Sequence record: OP617745.1
Length of the DNA stretch: 64,000 bases
Strand: one strand, 5' to 3'
Shown piece after piece: positions 30,877 to 37,681 of the stretch. The position numbers and the translations under genes were made by a program. Each line of letters starts with the position of its first letter. The first letter of the stretch is position 1. A model generated the notes under the pieces. The model had not been told where the DNA came from and searched no databases. It saw only the letters and a program-made list of their open reading frames with translations.

Positions 30877-31752
30877 ATGATTAACGTTATTAAACGTGAT
30901 GGATCAAAAGAACCACTTGACCTTGATAAAATTCACCAGATTTTATTTTTTGCATGTGAAGGTATTTCTGGTGTGTCTGTGTCTGAAATTGAAATTCGTG
31001 CTAAATTGCAATTTCATGAAGGAATTAAAACTTCTGTAATTCATGATATCCTGATTAAAAGTTCATCAGAGCTTATTTCTGAAGATACTCCAAATTATCA
31101 ATACGTAGCGGGTCGTCTTTTGAATTATAGTATTCGTAAAGAAGTTTATGGTCAGTATGAACCAATTCCTTACGGAGAATATGTAAATAACATGGTTCAA
31201 AAAGGTATATACGATCCTATCATTCTGGAAAAATATAATTCAGCAGAAATCGAAGAACTTGGGAAATACATTAAACACAAGCGTGATGATAAATTTACTT
31301 TTGTTGCGATGAGTCAATGGCAAGGTAAGTATCTGTGTAAAAACCGTGTAACTAAAGAAATTTATGAAACACCACAAATGGCTTATATGACTATCGCTGC
31401 TACGATTTTCTCTGAATATAGTACTGAAATTCGTTTGTCATATGTTAAGAAGTTCTATGATGCTATTAGTACTTTTGATATTAGTTTACCAACTCCGATT
31501 ATGTCCGGTCTTCGCACTAATACACGTCAGTTCTCAAGTTGTGTAGTACTGAATGTTGGCGATAGTCTTGATAGTATTGGTTCCAGTAATCATGCAATCT
31601 TGCGTTATATTTCACGTAAAGCAGGGCTTGGTGTTAATATGGGACGTATTCGTGCAATTGATTCTGCAATTCGTGATGGTGATGCAGTACATACTGGTGT
31701 AGTACCATTCTTATCTGCATTAGCAAAAACAGTTAAAAGCTGTTCACAGGGT
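30877..31752 (+). CDS. nrdA: Ribonucleotide reductase class Ia alpha subunit, exon 1 (ATP cone to SCSQG)
   Basis: VIKRDG ATP cone, PTPIMSG, FSSCV, GLGV and KSCSQG motifs; followed directly by an in-frame TAA that is the start of the intron. Confidence 0.95.
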
Positions 31753-32416
31753 TAATAACATAGCCGTCCATATTAGTAATAATATGGAGTATGATCTCTT
31801 TAATTGCTGGGAAATCCTAAAGCCTAAATATAACTTTAATGAAGTGATGAACAAGTTTAGGATGATACAATGGATAATCAGCAGGTAAGTTTTATGAATC
31901 TCTTATCTATACCAAAACATACAGAATATTATACTGATGGTAATGGAAATATCATCAGTACTAAAAGAAATAAAATAAAAACTTTGACTCCGCATTTACA
32001 TTATGGAAGAAGTAAAAATCCATATATGAGAGTAAAAGTTTCAGGGAAACTATATTTGGTGCATAGATTGGTAGCATCAATATTAGTTGGAAGAGAATTA
32101 TATGAAAATGAATATGTAAATCATATTGATGGAAATACGCAAAATAATTCATTATCTAACTTAGAAATAGTAACTCATATTGAAAATGTTCAACACGCCG
32201 TGGAAAATAAATTATATTGCCAAGGCAACGAATGGTATAAAGCACGAAATTTATAAAAAAACTTCAACGACTAGCTCATAGGAGCGTAGCATCAAGTGAT
32301 GCGAAATGGGAGACACCCTACAAATGAGGGTGAAGATATAGTCTAGACTGTATAGAAATATACAGAAGTTCATAAGAGAACTGGTGGTATCTAACGAATA
32401 CCATTGAATATAGTCG
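31753..32416 (+). mobile_element. Group I intron (IA2-like) in nrdA, 664 nt
   Basis: 5' splice site after U and a terminal G. P AATTGCTGGGAA (31802), Q AATCAGCAG (31876), R TTCAACGACTA (32263), S AAGATATAGTCT (32333). P2 with a GTAA loop, P7.1/P7.2, P8 and P9 with a GAAA loop. Splicing gives SCSQG/GVRGGAAT. Confidence 0.93.
31894..32256 (+). CDS. Intron-encoded HNH homing endonuclease
   Basis: VHRLVA...VNHIDGNTQNNSLSNLEIVTHIENVQHA. It lies between the Q and R elements (P6 loop). The start is 31870 or 31894. Confidence 0.85.
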   Translation: MNLLSIPKHTEYYTDGNGNIISTKRNKIKTLTPHLHYGRSKNPYMRVKVSGKLYLVHRLVASILVGRELYENEYVNHIDGNTQNNSLSNLEIVTHIENVQHAVENKLYCQGNEWYKARNL

Positions 32417-33163
32417 GGTGTAAGAGGCGGTGCAGCAACCGCGTATTTCCCAATGTGGCATTTGGAATTTGAAAATATTGTAGTACTGAAAAATAATAAA
32501 GGAACTGAATTTAACCGAGTAAGACAACTGGACTATTGCTTCCAAATCAATAAGACATTATATCAACGATTGATTGATGGAAAAGACATTACATTCTTTA
32601 GCCCACATGATGTTCCTGATCTATATGATGCATTTTGTGCTAATCAAGAAGAATTTGAACGTCTGTATATTAAGTATGAACTCGATGAAACTATTCGTAG
32701 GAAAACTATGCCAGCGATTGAAGCATTTAGTCATCTAATACAAGAGCGTGCAGAAACTGGCCGCATTTATATTCAGAATATTGATAATGCCAATGAGCAT
32801 GGTTCATTTATTCCAGAAATTGCACCAATTGAGCAAAGTAATCTTTGTTGTGTAACTGGTGAAACATTGGTTACTGTATTACTTGATAATAATCAAATGC
32901 AATTACCGATTATTGAAATATTGGATTTGATTGAATCTGGTAAAAATATAAAAGCAATGTCATACAACACAGAAACTGATACATACTCATTTGAAAAAAT
33001 CACGAATGCAATTAAAACAAAATCAGTAACTGAATATTATGAAATTGAAGATGAAAAAGGTAATATTCTTCGTTGTACTGAAGATCATTTGATTTATACA
33101 AAAAATCGTGGATATGTACGTGCTGACGAATTACAAGAAGATGATGAAATAATTTCATTGTAA
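32417..33163 (+). CDS. nrdA: nrdA exon 2 plus the N-half of split intein 1 (end of polypeptide 1)
   Basis: GVRGGAAT, PMWHLE, GRIYIQN and QSNLC, then the intein N-half and a stop codon. Confidence 0.93.
   Translation, partial: GVRGGAATAYFPMWHLEFENIVVLKNNKGTEFNRVRQLDYCFQINKTLYQRLIDGKDITFFSPHDVPDLYDAFCANQEEFERLYIKYELDETIRRKTMPAIEAFSHLIQERAETGRIYIQNIDNANEHGSFIPEIAPIEQSNLCCVTGETLVTVLLDNNQMQLPIIEILDLIESGKNIKAMSYNTETDTYSFEKITNAIKTKSVTEYYEIEDEKGNILRCTEDHLIYTKNRGYVRADELQEDDEIISL
32849..33160 (+). mobile_element. Split intein 1, N-half (104 aa)
   Basis: Block A CVTGETLV and block B LRCTEDHLIYT, then GYVRADELQEDD and a stop; no C-terminal HN in this frame. Confidence 0.9.
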
Positions 33164-33168
33164 TCATA

Positions 33169-33209
33169 GGTAGTGTGATTTCTAATAAATAACATGAAAT
33201 CACACTACC
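33169..33209 (+). promoter_or_regulatory. 14-bp hairpin with TAAATA in the loop, upstream of the GIY-YIG gene
   Basis: GGTAGTGTGATTTC-TAATAAATAACAT-GAAATCACACTACC. Confidence 0.7.
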
Positions 33210-33224
33210 ATTGAGACAACAATA

Positions 33225-33938
33225 ATGAAACAATACGAAGTATATTGTCATACTAATACATTAAACAATAAATCATATATTGGTTATACATCACAGAGTA
33301 CGTTGACGCGTCTACAAAAGCATATTTTAAATGCTAATTATGGCATACAAAGTCATTTTTACCGTGCAATAAGAAAATATGGCATTGAAGTATTCAGTAC
33401 TAAAATATTGTTTAAAACAGATATTTTAGAAGAAGCACTTGAAATGGAAAAATATTATATTAAAGAATATGATTCTATTGTAAATGGATATAATATGACT
33501 TCTGGTGGAACTGGTGGAAATACCCAAATAGGTTTTGATGATGAAAAAATGGAACAATATTTAAATGATTTGTCAAACAGAACTTCATCAGAAAAGAATC
33601 CAAATCATTCAGGTAAAACAGATGATGAAATTGTTGATTTTTATTATAATTTATATATGGAAAATATGAACTGGCTTAGTAGACCTTTTATGCTTAAAGC
33701 AAAAGAAAATGGAATACCACAATCATTTTCTAAATGTAGATTTAATGGTTTAGGGTGGACTGAATTACGAAAACGAATTTTGGAAAAAGTTCAAATAACT
33801 AATCCAGAAATTAAAGAAATAAAATATATTAGAACGAAAGAACATATTGAAAAATTATCAGGTACTCAATTTAAAAAAGGAATTAAGTGGAATGAGCAAC
33901 CTCAAAATAAGAAAAGTAAAGGTGGAAACACCAATTGA
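33225..33938 (+). CDS. Free-standing GIY-YIG homing endonuclease inside split intein 1
   Basis: EVYCHTN...YIGYT...RLQKH...EKYYI...GYNMTSGG. Confidence 0.9.
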   Translation: MKQYEVYCHTNTLNNKSYIGYTSQSTLTRLQKHILNANYGIQSHFYRAIRKYGIEVFSTKILFKTDILEEALEMEKYYIKEYDSIVNGYNMTSGGTGGNTQIGFDDEKMEQYLNDLSNRTSSEKNPNHSGKTDDEIVDFYYNLYMENMNWLSRPFMLKAKENGIPQSFSKCRFNGLGWTELRKRILEKVQITNPEIKEIKYIRTKEHIEKLSGTQFKKGIKWNEQPQNKKSKGGNTN

Positions 33939-34002
33939 TGTTTATGATATCACGGTAGAAAATAATCATAATTTCTTCGCAGATGAAATTTTAGTTCATA
34001 AC
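33892..34002 (+). mobile_element. Split intein 1, C-half (37 aa)
   Basis: Block F VYDITVENNHNFFA and block G ILVHN, with Cys at +1. Confidence 0.92.
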
Positions 34003-34917
34003 TGTGAGATTGACTTACCAAGTTCTCCATTTGAAGATATTAATAATGGTGATGGTCTTATTAGTCTATGTACTTTGAGTGCTATTAACTGGGGTAATTT
34101 TGACAAACCCGAAGATATGGAAGAAGCGTGTGATTTGGCCGTTCGTGCATTAGATGCTATTCTTGATTATCAGGATTATCCAGTTGTTCACGCAGAACGA
34201 GCTACAAAGCTCTATAGGCCGCTTGGTGTTGGTATCATGAGTTTGGCTTACTTCCTTGCTAAACGTGGTTTAAAATACGATACAAACGCATTGAGCACTA
34301 TTAACGAATGGTCAGAAGCGTGGTCTTATTATTTGATTAAAGCATCGGTGAATCTTGCCAAAGAAAAAGGACGCTGTGATGGATTTAATAATACCAAGTA
34401 CTCACAAGGTTTATTCCCTCATGATACTTATAAATCAGATTCATATATTAATGAAGTTGCCCCGTATGAACTAAAACAAGATTGGGATGCACTACGTGAA
34501 GAAATGGTGGAGCATGGTATTCGAAATGCAACTCTACATGCTATTATGCCAGGCGAATGCCAATCGTGGGACAATAAACTAAACACAGTAGAATATGGAA
34601 ATATTGATTTTCATGAATTATGCGAAAAATATGGAATTAATTATGAAGATGTAGAACGTAATGGTATTCCAGATTCATATAATTTAGCACAACCATTAAA
34701 GATTAATACTGCTAATGGTGAAAAAGAAGCGACTCGACTTTATTATAATGGAAACTATGAAATTTATAAATTAACTTTTGATGATGGTAATGAATATTCA
34801 TTTACTGGTAATCATCAACTAAAAGTTATTGAAGATGGTGTTGAATTCTGGTGCAGAGTTGATATGTTAACAGAAAATATGGAAGTTGTTAATATAAATG
34901 AAAAGAATAAAGGATGA
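33892..34917 (+). CDS. nrdA: nrdA polypeptide 2: IntC1 - NrdA middle (185 aa) - IntN2
   Basis: MSNLKIRK...VYDITV...LVHN/CEIDLP, SLCTLSAINWG, RPLGVG, NATLHAIMPGE/CQSWD. The ATG at 33892 follows an AAGGA/GTGGA RBS. Confidence 0.92.
   Translation: MSNLKIRKVKVETPIDVYDITVENNHNFFADEILVHNCEIDLPSSPFEDINNGDGLISLCTLSAINWGNFDKPEDMEEACDLAVRALDAILDYQDYPVVHAERATKLYRPLGVGIMSLAYFLAKRGLKYDTNALSTINEWSEAWSYYLIKASVNLAKEKGRCDGFNNTKYSQGLFPHDTYKSDSYINEVAPYELKQDWDALREEMVEHGIRNATLHAIMPGECQSWDNKLNTVEYGNIDFHELCEKYGINYEDVERNGIPDSYNLAQPLKINTANGEKEATRLYYNGNYEIYKLTFDDGNEYSFTGNHQLKVIEDGVEFWCRVDMLTENMEVVNINEKNKG
34558..34914 (+). mobile_element. Split intein 2, N-half (119 aa)
   Basis: Begins CQSWDNKL after MPGE; block B SFTGNHQLKV, then WCRVDML and a stop. 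Confidence 0.88.
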
Positions 34918-35869
34918 ATTAAAATGTAATCAATATAATAGCCAAGAATTGTACTTGGCTATATTTGAATATTATAAGAATTTAAAAAATAAGCAAAGTA
35001 AAAAATTTAGAAAATATGTAGAAGAATCTAGATTATATAATATTGAATCTATGAAAAAGTTCTTTGCACTACAGGGTCATGGTATTGCTTATAAACCGGA
35101 ATATTATATGTATCTTCATTGTGTTGATGAAAAACAAGCTAATGAATATTTGAACATAATGATGGAAAATAAAAAAACCTCTAAAGAAAATTTTATTAAA
35201 AAGCATGGCATGGAAAAAGGTACATTATTGTGGAATGAATTTAAGAATAAAACATTAAATAAAACTCCAACTCGTGGAACTATGTATTTTACGGGTAATA
35301 ACGAACTTGATAAAATGCTATCATCATTATATAGAAAGATAACAAATAAAAGGTGTATAGAATATTATTTACACAATTATGATATTTCATATGAAAAAGC
35401 ATTAGAGTTGCAATTAAATTATCAAAAAGAAAATTCTGGTGTATTTGGAGAATATTATGAACTTAGAGATTTATCACATAAACCTAAATTTGATCATACG
35501 TTTGAAGTTACACAAGAATGCATACGTAAACGCCAAATATCAAAAAATAAACTTGGGAAATGTGTACATCCTGATGATAAAAAAGAATGGGAAAAATATA
35601 GAAATAAAGTATGTTCGTTAACAAGAAAAGAAATTTATATTTCTGAATTAGAAAATTATGATTTATATATAAAAAACCCAAACGAATGGCATCTGGATCA
35701 TATTGTATCTAAAATACATGGATTTTTAAACTCGGTACCACCGGAAATAATTGCTTCTATTCATAATTTACAGATTATTCCAGCTAAAGAGAATATAGCA
35801 AAAAACTATAGAAGTAATATGGACATTAATGATTTATTAAGGATATATAATGAAAATCGTAAAAATTGA
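34898..35869 (+). CDS. Free-standing HNH homing endonuclease inside split intein 2
   Basis: C-terminal HLDHIVS...HNLQIIPAKENIAKN; overlaps both flanking nrdA pieces by 20 nt. Confidence 0.8.
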   Translation: MKRIKDELKCNQYNSQELYLAIFEYYKNLKNKQSKKFRKYVEESRLYNIESMKKFFALQGHGIAYKPEYYMYLHCVDEKQANEYLNIMMENKKTSKENFIKKHGMEKGTLLWNEFKNKTLNKTPTRGTMYFTGNNELDKMLSSLYRKITNKRCIEYYLHNYDISYEKALELQLNYQKENSGVFGEYYELRDLSHKPKFDHTFEVTQECIRKRQISKNKLGKCVHPDDKKEWEKYRNKVCSLTRKEIYISELENYDLYIKNPNEWHLDHIVSKIHGFLNSVPPEIIASIHNLQIIPAKENIAKNYRSNMDINDLLRIYNENRKN

Positions 35870-35954
35870 AAAAAATGGAATAAAACCAACTTGGGATATT
35901 GAAGTCCCTGATGGAAATGAATATGTTCTTCCAAATGGTATTGTATCTCATAAT
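35850..35954 (+). mobile_element. Split intein 2, C-half (35 aa)
   Basis: Block F TWDIEVP and block G IVSHN, with Thr at +1. Confidence 0.92.
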
Positions 35955-36407
35955 ACATCATCACAAATTAGTAATAGTACTGCTGGTATTGAAAAGATTC
36001 GTTCTCTTGTAACAGTAAAAACTTCTAAAGATGGTGTTCTTAAACAAGTTGTACCTGAAATTTCAAAATTAAAGAACAAATATGACCTACTATGGGAACA
36101 ATCTGATAATATTGGTTATCTTCAGGTGTGTGGTGTTATGCAGAAATATATGGATCAAGGTATAAGTACTAATACGAGTTATAATCCTGAAAAGTTCCAA
36201 GATGGAAAAGTGCCAATGTCAGTACTGTTAACAGAACTCCTAATGGCTTATAAACTTAACGCGAAACAACTTTATTATCATAACGTGTTGGATAATGCTT
36301 CTGAAGTTGATATTGACAAATATATGGAAGAAAAAAATAAATTAACAAAAAATGATATTGTTTTGCCTGAGCTACCAGAAGATGATTGTGAGAGTTGTAA
36401 ATTGTAA
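35850..36407 (+). CDS. nrdA: nrdA polypeptide 3: IntC2 - NrdA C-terminus (150 aa)
   Basis: MKIVKIEK...TWDIEV...IVSHN/TSSQISNST, DQGISTN, LYY and the terminal CESCKL. Confidence 0.93.
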   Translation: MKIVKIEKNGIKPTWDIEVPDGNEYVLPNGIVSHNTSSQISNSTAGIEKIRSLVTVKTSKDGVLKQVVPEISKLKNKYDLLWEQSDNIGYLQVCGVMQKYMDQGISTNTSYNPEKFQDGKVPMSVLLTELLMAYKLNAKQLYYHNVLDNASEVDIDKYMEEKNKLTKNDIVLPELPEDDCESCKL

Positions 36408-36503
36408 TATATTAATTACTAAAAATATCACAAATTAATATCAATAGTAAAAAGCTAAACACCATATAACGGTTTTACTTTCAAATACAAATACTAATAT
36501 AAC

Positions 36504-36529
36504 AAATCCCACAATTACGTGGGATTTTT
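36504..36529 (+). terminator. Intrinsic terminator
   Basis: AAATCCCAC-AATTAC-GTGGGATTTTT. Confidence 0.7.
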
Positions 36530-36556
36530 ATTCTATAAAACAAAGGAATGTAACAA

Positions 36557-37681
36557 ATGTCAGTGTTTCAAAAAAATACAAAATCACATTTAGAAAAGAA
36601 TATGTTTTTTGATGAAGCGGTAGATATCCAACGCTTTGAAACTAATAAGTATTCTACCATTGAGAAATTAACCGAACAACAAAAAGGATTTTTCTGGAGT
36701 CCAGGTGAAGTTGATGTAAATAAAGACAAAATTGATTTTGCTAAATTATCCGAAGCGGAAAAGCATATTTTCACTTCCAACCTCAAACGTCAGATACTAC
36801 TTGATTCAGTACAGGGTCGTGGTCCAAACACAGTACTTCTACCACTGGCTTCGTTACCAGAAGTAGAAAATTTTATTGAAACTTGGGCGTTCTTTGAAGG
36901 TGCAATTCATAGTAAATCATATACTCATATTATTCGTAACATCTACACCAATCCATCTGAAGTGTTTGATACTATGCTTGATATTCCTGAAATTCTGGAT
37001 TGTGCCGTTGACGTATCTAAGTACTATGATGATTTAGAAGAATACGGTACTTGGTATCGTATGCTTGGTGTTGGTACACATACAATCAATGGCAAAGAAC
37101 TTGTTATTGACATGTATGAACTAAAAAAGAAACTATGGTTGTGCTTAAATTCCATTAACGTATTGGAGGGTATACGATTTTATGTCTCATTCTCTGCATC
37201 CTTTGCATTTGGTGAAAATAAAATCATGGAAGGTAGTGCCAAGATCATTAGACTAATTGCGAGGGATGAGTCTCTCCATTTAGCAGCAACTCAAATGATT
37301 CTTCGTTTGTTGAAAAAAGAAGATCCAGACTTTGTTAAAATTTCTGAAGAATGCTATGATGAAGTCCAGAGTATGTTCCTGGATGCTATTAAGCAAGAAG
37401 AAGACTGGGCTGATTATCTATTTAAAGATGGTTCTATTATCGGTCTTAATGCTGAAATACTAAAACAGTATGTTCGCTGGATTGGATCTAAACGTATGGC
37501 CGCAGTTGGAATTAAGTGTCCATATGCTGTAACAAAAAATAGCCCACTCCCATGGATGGAACATTGGATTAGTAGTGCGGGTGTGCAGGTTGCACCACAA
37601 GAAACTGAAATTAGTTCTTATGTAATTGGTGGAATTAAAGCAGATATTACAGAAAACACGTTCAGTTCATTTAAACTATAA
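36557..37681 (+). CDS. nrdB: Ribonucleotide reductase class Ia beta subunit
   Basis: FWSPGEV, LDSVQGR, IHSKSY, LEGIRFYVSF and RDESLH motifs and a PQETEISSY tail; uninterrupted. Confidence 0.96.
   Translation: MSVFQKNTKSHLEKNMFFDEAVDIQRFETNKYSTIEKLTEQQKGFFWSPGEVDVNKDKIDFAKLSEAEKHIFTSNLKRQILLDSVQGRGPNTVLLPLASLPEVENFIETWAFFEGAIHSKSYTHIIRNIYTNPSEVFDTMLDIPEILDCAVDVSKYYDDLEEYGTWYRMLGVGTHTINGKELVIDMYELKKKLWLCLNSINVLEGIRFYVSFSASFAFGENKIMEGSAKIIRLIARDESLHLAATQMILRLLKKEDPDFVKISEECYDEVQSMFLDAIKQEEDWADYLFKDGSIIGLNAEILKQYVRWIGSKRMAAVGIKCPYAVTKNSPLPWMEHWISSAGVQVAPQETEISSYVIGGIKADITENTFSSFKL

Follow-up and report, generated by a model that had tools for sequence, protein, structure and literature searches.

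The nrdA locus of Klebsiella phage KP13-7

The window analysed is a stretch of 64,000 nucleotides of the sequence of Klebsiella phage KP13-7 (OP617745.1, genus Alcyoneusvirus, 357.7 kb); window coordinates are identical to record coordinates. The subject is a cassette of 1154 bp at 32849-34002 within nrdA, the gene for the class Ia ribonucleotide reductase (RNR) subunit NrdA. The cassette is very probably a selfish element of composite make-up that belongs to the 'fractured gene' type; in it a class 1 split intein flanks a GIY-YIG gene, and nrdA acquired it recently in the already split state. This reading is based on sequence comparison. The layout of nrdA was derived from the listing of open reading frames (ORFs) together with Pfam. 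In GenBank the gene is annotated as two 'nrdA' pieces and six 'hypothetical proteins'. The cassette and its adjoining exons are composed as follows (IntN and IntC, N- and C-terminal halves of the intein; aa, amino acids).

32416-32848, + strand: nrdA exon 2, the N-extein of intein 1 (Pfam Ribonuc_red_lgC and RaK2 alignment), ending in ...IEQSNLC
32453-33163, + strand: ORF of exon 2 fused to IntN (ORF listing)
32849-33163, + strand: IntN of split intein 1, 104 codons (32849-33160) and stop codon TAA (33161-33163)
33169-33209, + strand: hairpin with a perfect 14-bp stem and a 13-nt loop, in the interval from the IntN stop to the nuclease start
33225-33938, + strand: free-standing GIY-YIG homing-endonuclease gene, 237 aa (Pfam GIY-YIG)
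33877-33881, + strand: Shine-Dalgarno (SD) sequence AAGGA of IntC, within the nuclease ORF, 10 nt before the ATG
33892-34002, + strand: IntC of split intein 1, 37 aa; the GenBank coding sequence also starts at 33892
33892-34917, + strand: reading frame of IntC, exon 3 and the IntN of a second intein, IntN2 (ORF listing)
34003-34557, + strand: nrdA exon 3, the C-extein of intein 1, first codon TGT (Cys+1)

The limits of the cassette are those of a gap in the DNA alignment with the nrdA genes of phages RaK2 and phiKp_21. Seven RaK2-type records have nrdA without insertions, 96% identical to KP13-7 in the exons. The nrdA of phiKp_21 carries the last insertion (intein 2) only. The three-way alignment (KP13-7, RaK2 L003, phiKp_21 L002; designations of this form are working handles) has gaps at 31752-32415, 32849-34002 and 34558-35954. 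The exons of KP13-7 total 2316 nt, which is the length of RaK2 nrdA (771 codons and a stop). The original prediction, made from the letters of the stretch, placed at 32849-34002 a split intein at the radical cysteine of RNR with a GIY-YIG gene between the halves; this interval is exactly the gap against both relatives.

Insertion point

The codon before the intein (TGT, 32846-32848) encodes the thiyl-radical Cys, aligned with C439 of Escherichia coli R1. The codon after it (34003-34005) is TGT, Cys+1; RaK2 has CAG (Gln) at this position, and all three bases differ. The segment S-N-L-C-Q-E-I of RaK2 aligns without gaps to S436...C439-L440-E441-I442 of E. coli R1, which places the intein between C439 and residue 440, after SNLC and with Cys at +1 as originally predicted. 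The predicted mature junction is SNLC-CEI, with the N-x-C-x-E spacing kept and Cys instead of the RaK2 Gln at 440. As judged from the alignment, KP13-7 has a class Ia NrdA interrupted at the 'NrdJ' insertion point, because the NrdA insertion of Dassa et al. lies directly N-terminal to the thiyl Cys; at least 10 other sequences share the junction. Two registers occur among the relatives. In NL^C the catalytic Cys is itself the +1 residue (L005, L006, L010, L011 and Yersinia phage TG1). NLC^C...HN^CEI lies one codon later (KP13-7, L007, L009, L017, L019, Campylobacter phage CPt10, P0114, P0178, P0187, P0246).

Split intein 1

IntN is acidic, with a net charge of -11 and pI 4.35, and ends in ...DELQEDDEIISL. 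Block A has Cys1 in CVTGETLV and aligns with the C-[LV]-x-G-[DE]-[TS] of homologues and of more than 100 database relatives. Block B is T-E-D-H (R-C-T-E-D-H), aligned to the CTPDH of NrdJ-1 and homologues. IntN matches Pfam Intein_splicing at profile positions 1-93 with 35.8 bits, which is at the cut-off. The best match to a solved structure is the NrdJ-1 intein 8ubs (E = 1e-17), with a nearly identical stretch ...TKNRGYVRADEL..DDE... IntC reads MSNLKIRKVKVE... VYDITVENNHNFFA (block F) ...ILVHN (block G). Blocks F and G extend to the terminal H-N, after which the +1 nucleophile follows (VYDITVENNHNFFADEILVHN, then C). The first 12 residues of IntC carry a charge of +3 and the whole of IntC a net charge of -2; it is basic at the N-terminus only. 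IntC matches Pfam Intein_splicing at profile positions 120-155 with 39.3 bits, above the cut-off of 35.8. In PDB it matches several solved inteins at their C-terminal ends, Spl DnaX, NrdJ-1 and gp41-1 among them. The lengths and charges of both halves are as originally described. IntC N-termini are acidic in L006, L007 and L009, and the charge pattern is not kept across the family.

The halves are encoded by separate ORFs, with TAA at 33161-33163, ATG at 33892 and three reading frames (IntN 2, nuclease 0, IntC 1). The nuclease gene overlaps the start of IntC by 47 nt and contains the IntC ribosome-binding site, both as originally predicted. The break falls between blocks B and F, in the canonical loop for endonuclease insertion, and in the alignment it coincides with a short linker in the contiguous relative P0149. 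The splice-critical residues are complete: Cys1, TxxH, block F, HN and Cys+1. By its motifs intein 1 is a class 1 split intein of the HINT fold, and splicing is predicted. TTG at 33847 was considered as a start of IntC and ruled out: it has no SD sequence, and homologous IntC in an alignment of six begin at the position of ATG 33892.

GIY-YIG nuclease

The nuclease has pI 9.1; residues 1-95 form the catalytic domain. Scores 30.6 against Pfam GIY-YIG (cut-off 22.6) and matches PHROG 'homing endonuclease' families (phrog_314 and others). A profile of 26 family members matches the catalytic domain of I-TevI, 1mk0, with E = 4e-8. In the alignment of these 26 members E75 and N90 do not vary, R29 and H33 hardly vary, and Y..Y and YIG are invariant or nearly so. 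The AF2 (AlphaFold) model has a mean confidence (pLDDT, predicted local distance difference test) of 84 and is matched by Foldseek to 1mk0 with a template-modelling (TM) score of 0.83, a root-mean-square deviation of 1.7 A and 31% identity. Residues ~100-220 form a confidently modelled helical C-terminal region, presumed to bind DNA; the motifs KNPNHSG and PQSFSKxRF are conserved in the family. From residue 221 onwards the tail is of low model confidence. No PDB match was obtained for the C-terminal 140 aa in the Foldseek search of the model, and no NUMOD in the Pfam search. By motifs, catalytic residues and fold the protein is a GIY-YIG homing endonuclease, and cleavage is predicted.

Hairpin and expression signals

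The hairpin has a minimum free energy of -28.5 kcal/mol (z = -8.2; 0 of 200 shuffled sequences were as stable). An outer helix of 9 bp is also predicted, formed by the last IntN codons (33153-33161) and 33222-33230, which includes the nuclease ATG. No run of T follows the hairpin, and it is not a canonical terminator. Hairpins of different sequence occur at the equivalent position in L005, L007, L010, L011 and L019. By analogy, the hairpin is inferred to restrain translation of the nuclease. The sequence AAGG(A) stands 8-11 nt before the ATG of nrdA, IntC2 (the IntC of the second intein), nrdB, orf45 (AAGG only) and orf46. AGGA precedes the start of the HNH ORF in the upstream group I intron at a similar distance. 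Neither nuclease gene between intein halves (the GIY-YIG gene and the 323-aa ORF of intein 2) has an AAGG(A) SD sequence. A scan for sigma-70 promoters was uninformative in this AT-rich DNA (45 sites, 41.5 expected). A late promoter of the T4/Aeh1 type, TATAAATA, was sought in the hairpin loop and rejected; the loop has only AATAAATA. The octamer TATAAATA is rarer than expected in the whole window (3 against 14.9 +/- 3.7). An Rfam search over 31500-36600 at E <= 0.1 gave spurious miRNA matches on the hairpin only and missed the upstream intron.

Relatives of the cassette

Full-length homologues of the nuclease in protein databases are 32-47% identical. In all six genomic contexts examined (L005, L006, L007, L009, L010, L011) the homologous gene lies between the nrdA-IntN and IntC pieces. 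L019, reached through IntN, has the same layout, with a 36%-identical GIY-YIG nuclease, an overlap of 35 nt and a hairpin. The IntN and IntC copies of the homologous loci all align with one break point. IntN of the seven other phage contigs with a GIY-YIG gene between nrdA intein halves is 26-48% identical to that of KP13-7, and the split is therefore much more ancient than the insertion in KP13-7. IntN was searched against 1.84 billion representatives, with 1027 matches. Among the best 150 of these, 114 end within 6 residues of the KP13-7 IntN end, and nearly all follow SNL, SNLC or NP, that is, the RNR active site (NL^C, NLC^C, NP^C). Back-translated pattern scans of IMG/VR found one relative of IntN and none of the nuclease.

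The occupant of the break varies. The highest IntN identity to KP13-7 is 48%, in L017 (L017:2013-7178), where nrdA is in at least 3 pieces; an ORF of 280 aa and one of 311 aa with an HNH-like motif lie between them, with no GIY-YIG gene there. Yersinia phage vB_YenM_TG1 (L012) has nrdA annotated as two RNR genes and an HNH homing endonuclease, which is a split intein at the NL^C site. In Campylobacter phage CPt10 (L013, FN667789.1 117773-121840) a 'pseudogene disrupted by two CDS' is a split intein at NLC^C. The CPt10 halves are intact (CLAGDT... and ...VHN/CEI), with two ORFs of no assigned function between them. Contiguous mini-inteins in the NLC^C register are present in P0149 and P0175. 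A phylogeny of IntN (125 rows, 105 columns) gave no supported sister group of KP13-7; its forks are unresolved, with split, contiguous, site-a and site-b labels spread over them, and therefore the order of split and contiguous forms is not shown by the tree. The comparison with contiguous inteins proposed in the original prediction has thus found such inteins at the same site and left the direction of change undecided.

In L007 (4747-6059), L009 (4795-6161) and P0175, nrdA is broken again ~20 codons after the intein (after ..DDAG). This break has a tail of ~50 aa upstream and a head of 12 aa downstream, neither with intein motifs; in L007 no gene lies between them. It could be a docking split like that of Aeh1 or the remnant of an intein.

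Other insertions and exons of nrdA

The remaining parts of KP13-7 nrdA and its neighbour are as follows.

30877-31752, + strand: nrdA exon 1, with ATP-cone, RNR N-domain and start of the barrel
31753-32416, + strand: group I intron, the first insertion in nrdA (gap against RaK2 and phiKp_21; Rfam RF00028), with an HNH_3 ORF inside
31870-32256, + strand: HNH_3 endonuclease ORF in the group I intron (Pfam HNH_3)
34558-35954, + strand: second split intein in nrdA (gap against RaK2), with IntN2 at 34558-34917 and IntC2 at 35850-35954
34898-35869, + strand: nuclease-like ORF of 323 aa in the second intein (phrog_5104; weak endonuclease VII match)
35850-36407, + strand: IntC2 and exon 4 (ORF listing)
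36557-37681, + strand: nrdB, intact, downstream of nrdA

The group I intron sits at CSQG^G, with exon 1 ending in ...CAGGGT and the intron in ...GTCG. The match to RF00028 (43.3 bits, E = 1.3e-9) is under the gathering score of 50 and was detected only when short stretches were searched. The intron is missing from RaK2 and phiKp_21; short diverged flanks adjoin it on either side in KP13-7. Two codons from the intron site, at KSC^SQGG, a metagenomic nrdA (L007:1869-3956) is interrupted by a contiguous mini-intein. The KSC/CSQG region of nrdA is a hot spot for two kinds of mobile element. Intein 2 is inserted at MPGE^TSS, with Cys1 and Thr+1; the 323-aa ORF shares 20 nt with each half, contains an HNH-like H..N..N motif and gave no Pfam match. 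Intein 2 is common to phiKp_21, and a homologous intein is found at the same site in L009 and P0149. IntN1 and IntN2 are 25% identical; the two inteins are unrelated. Between nrdA and nrdB phiKp_21 has an additional ORF of 232 aa (L002:5429-6124), missing in RaK2 and KP13-7, which may be another free-standing mobile gene.

Acquisition of the cassette

Exons 1, 2 and 4 of KP13-7 differ from those of RaK2 by 1.5%, 2.1% and 2.0%, respectively. In exon 3 the divergence is 10.7% at 34003-34395 and 13.0% at 34396-34557. phiKp_21 has KP13-7-like sequence in 34396-34557 (162 bp) and RaK2-like sequence in 34003-34395; the sequence of 34003-34395 is unique to KP13-7. Upstream of intein 1 the only differences are at position 32642 and in the Leu codon at -2, where TTG has become CTT. 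The changes in exon 3 are mostly synonymous (63 nt and 14 aa differences in 185 codons). From this pattern of divergence, all of exon 3 is therefore donor-type DNA, ~11% diverged; as read from the alignment it is an imported, co-converted flank, including the Cys+1 codon in place of Gln. The cassettes have a GC content of 26-29%, the exons of 33-40%. Two histories fit: the inteins may have been acquired independently, each accompanied by a tract of its own, or intein 1, exon 3 and intein 2 may have come in together as a block, with phiKp_21 a recombinant.

None of the eight other Alcyoneusvirus records has an intein at the site of intein 1 (seven insertion-free nrdA; intein 2 only in phiKp_21). 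Since relatives of ~96% identity are free of the cassette and seven contigs have the same break, it therefore entered KP13-7 whole and already split.

An ENA metagenomic contig, L015, encodes a 100%-identical nuclease and has 99.07% DNA identity to 33126-35369 (2.2 kb); it represents a KP13-7-like phage. P0002, a 76%-identical nuclease, is from a short contig, L016, which is 99.5% identical to KP13-7 over 392 bp, with no match to the window beyond. Both contigs start (L015:1-11, L016:1-11) with a primer-like GTTTCCCAGTCACGATA, joined at the same phage position, 33126. GTTTCCCAGTCACGATA presumably resembles a primer for random amplification (sequence-independent, single-primer amplification, SISPA); if so, it is adapter carry-over in public assemblies.

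Interpretation

If the cassette is a fractured-gene element, expression and spread would proceed as follows. The nrdA region would be transcribed as one message. The fragment of N-extein and IntN would stop at the TAA, and translation of the fragment of IntC and extein would start independently, served by the strong AAGGA within the nuclease ORF. The acidic IntN would associate with IntC at the basic N-terminus of the latter, and trans-splicing would join ...SNLC to CEIDLP..., restoring the N-x-C-x-E loop. Counting also the upstream group I intron and the downstream second split intein, NrdA of 771 aa would be assembled from three polypeptides, and nrdA would need one RNA splicing step and two protein trans-splicing steps. 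The nuclease would be poorly translated, with no consensus SD and a start next to or inside a stable hairpin. In mixed infection it would cut intein-less nrdA near the active-site codons, and repair from the KP13-7 allele would copy the cassette and its flanks. Homing is suggested, indirectly, by the divergent flank beside the insertion and by the recurrent site association in 8 loci.

Several points weigh against this reading. Trans-splicing and DNA cleavage by the nuclease are inferred. Given the recent acquisition, intact ORFs in KP13-7 alone are weak functional evidence. The tail of the nuclease is shorter than in homologues and diverged exactly at the IntC overlap, and the enzyme could be impaired. 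The function of the hairpin is assigned by analogy only (I-TevI, mobE). The Cys at 440, adjoining the radical Cys, may carry a cost for RNR activity, although the same NLC-C..N-CEI junction is found in L007, L009, L017, L019 and CPt10. For the exon 3 tract, the databases searched hold no donor closer than the RaK2-type phages.

The original prediction attributed the split to invasion by the nuclease gene. For the distant origin of the family, nuclease invasion of a contiguous mini-intein is the standing model, and it is the general model of Dassa et al. (2009). Placed within KP13-7, where a contiguous mini-intein already in the nrdA of the lineage would have been split by the GIY-YIG gene, it is highly improbable. 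Contiguous mini-inteins of the same family do occur at the same site (P0149, P0175), and the varied occupants of the break (HNH in TG1 and L017, ORFs of no assigned function in CPt10) indicate that invasion or replacement takes place; however, the close relatives lack the intein, the split shared with the seven contigs predates the KP13-7 insertion, and the exon 3 flank is derived from a donor. The possibility that the nuclease ORF belongs to a group I intron within a contiguous intein gene, with RNA splicing restoring one intein ORF, is the most remote of those considered. GIY-YIG genes are typical passengers of introns and a genuine group I intron lies 1.1 kb upstream in nrdA, but the short-stretch Rfam search that found that intron detected nothing of RF00028 in 33100-33960. 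The non-coding DNA here amounts to only 61 nt, the spacing of IntN and nuclease in homologous loci (2 nt in L006, a 4-nt overlap in L009) leaves no room for an intron core, and IntC has its own ATG and SD.

Two further explanations accept the split and deny its splicing. In one, the element is dead or dying: the halves do not splice, nrdA is inactive and the phage relies on the RNR of the host or on other phage genes. A recent arrival has left little time for selection, the CPt10 equivalent is annotated as a pseudogene, and the nuclease tail is diverged. Against decay, the four nrdA pieces have open frames, consensus SDs and all catalytic intein residues, and nrdB is intact; L015 has the same nuclease protein sequence, and ORFs are called throughout its matching stretch; blocks A, B, F and G are conserved among IntN copies of 26-67% identity, which argues for purifying selection. 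In the other, the NrdA fragments assemble non-covalently, as in Aeh1 nrdA/mobE, and the intein halves are a docking module only. Aeromonas phage Aeh1 provides a precedent (Friedrich 2007, Crona 2011), and L007 and L009 have the further nrdA break with non-intein tails; yet the break is inside the N-x-C-x-E catalytic loop, and Cys1, Cys+1 and the terminal Asn are kept, which docking alone does not need. Both are disfavoured because the nucleophiles are intact, the SDs are consensus and conservation is family-wide. Decay is accordingly judged unlikely and docking very unlikely. The preferred reading stays that of a fractured-gene element that arrived split.

A bolder version of this reading is put forward tentatively, as a possibility that is rather doubtful. 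One nuclease-driven gene conversion may have brought in intein 1, exon 3 and intein 2 together (~32843-35969, 3.1 kb) from an unsampled, ~11% diverged relative; two unrelated, probably orthogonal split inteins and the group I intron would make a three-piece NrdA; and the insertion point one codon past the radical Cys, with its forced Gln-to-Cys change, would indicate that this intein-nuclease family has switched register (NL^C, NLC^C) or host protein (NrdJ, NrdA). RaK2 and K64-1 are cultured phages with the empty site, and with them KP13-7 would be a tractable system for split-intein homing; it could also supply a new orthogonal pair of split inteins.

The mobility model for split-intein homing has rested mostly on inference since the metagenome definition of 2009. 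KP13-7 has been used in phage-therapy work, and its empty-site relatives and the intermediate phiKp_21 make homing, co-conversion and the cost of Cys440 testable. The annotation is corrected for the KP13-7 pieces ('hypothetical protein') and for the CPt10 equivalent ('pseudogene'). For protein engineering, a split intein like NrdJ-1 with Cys+1 and an unrelated second split intein resident in the same gene may be of use as an orthogonal pair.

Comparison with known systems

NrdJ-1 (8ubs/9omb) shares with KP13-7 the insertion point after the radical Cys, the charge polarity and the origin in a fractured locus. Differs in the host protein, class II NrdJ against class Ia NrdA of KP13-7, and IntN identity is moderate only. 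Its +1 residue is presumably Ser, not Cys. The kinetics of NrdJ-1 were reportedly characterised by Carvajal-Vallejos and colleagues in 2012. gp41-1 (6qaz) is likewise a natural phage split intein, and its gene is fractured too; its IntC is small, and the KP13-7 IntC matches it weakly (E = 0.008). It differs in the host gene, a helicase, in the reversed charge polarity and in IntN, with no similarity at E <= 1. The original prediction likened the halves to charge-complementary inteins such as gp41-1; the acidic IntN and the basic start of IntC agree with this locally, but the polarity is opposite to that of gp41-1 and the pattern is not family-wide.

TG1 and CPt10 have the intein family and the nrdA break point of KP13-7, with IntN identity of ~27-33%. 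TG1 differs in the NL^C register and the HNH nuclease; CPt10 has the NLC^C...HN^CEI junction of KP13-7 and differs in the two ORFs of no assigned function. In the catalytic fold and residues, I-TevI of the T4 td intron matches the KP13-7 nuclease; it is intron-encoded, and its region of Zn-finger, minor-groove helix and helix-turn-helix was not detected in the KP13-7 nuclease by Pfam or in PDB. The nrdA of Aeromonas phage Aeh1, split by the HNH gene mobE, resembles that of KP13-7 in a homing-endonuclease gene within nrdA, a hairpin that restrains the nuclease (predicted for KP13-7) and a downstream overlap (Friedrich et al. 2007; Gibb and Edgell 2007). It differs in having no intein, non-covalent fragments and another position in nrdA.

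The closest descriptions are those of Dassa et al. 2009 (PMC2677866), who defined 26 'fractured gene' loci, including NrdA-1 to NrdA-7 and NrdJ-1/2, with a GIY-YIG or Vsr-like nuclease between split-intein halves. Hairpins stand 5' of the nuclease in 15 of 16 loci, and the nuclease overlaps IntC by 6-69 bp in 15 loci. Interface charges are negative in the N-half and positive in the C-half of NrdA-2, NrdJ-1 and IMPDH-1, and reversed in gp41-1 and gp41-8. In the model of these authors the invading nuclease supplies stop, start and control signals. In NrdA-1 to NrdA-7 (Dassa, London, Stoddard, Schueler-Furman and Pietrokovski, NAR 2009) the phage-type large subunit of class I RNR is broken at the radical site, as in KP13-7, and NrdA-2 has the same interface polarity as KP13-7 has locally. 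The NrdA loci are of the NL^C type, with the catalytic Cys as +1, whereas in KP13-7 the interruption follows the next codon (NLC^C) and residue 440 is a new Cys. They are ocean metagenome fragments, compared here by description only; KP13-7 is a cultured Klebsiella jumbo phage with sequenced empty-site relatives. The fractured-gene arrangement is not new, and in concept KP13-7 goes little further than Dassa et al. 2009. Of modest interest are the cultured, near-isogenic empty-site partners, co-conversion with a forced Gln-to-Cys change at 440, nrdA in three polypeptides and a class Ia NrdA interrupted at the 'NrdJ' point.

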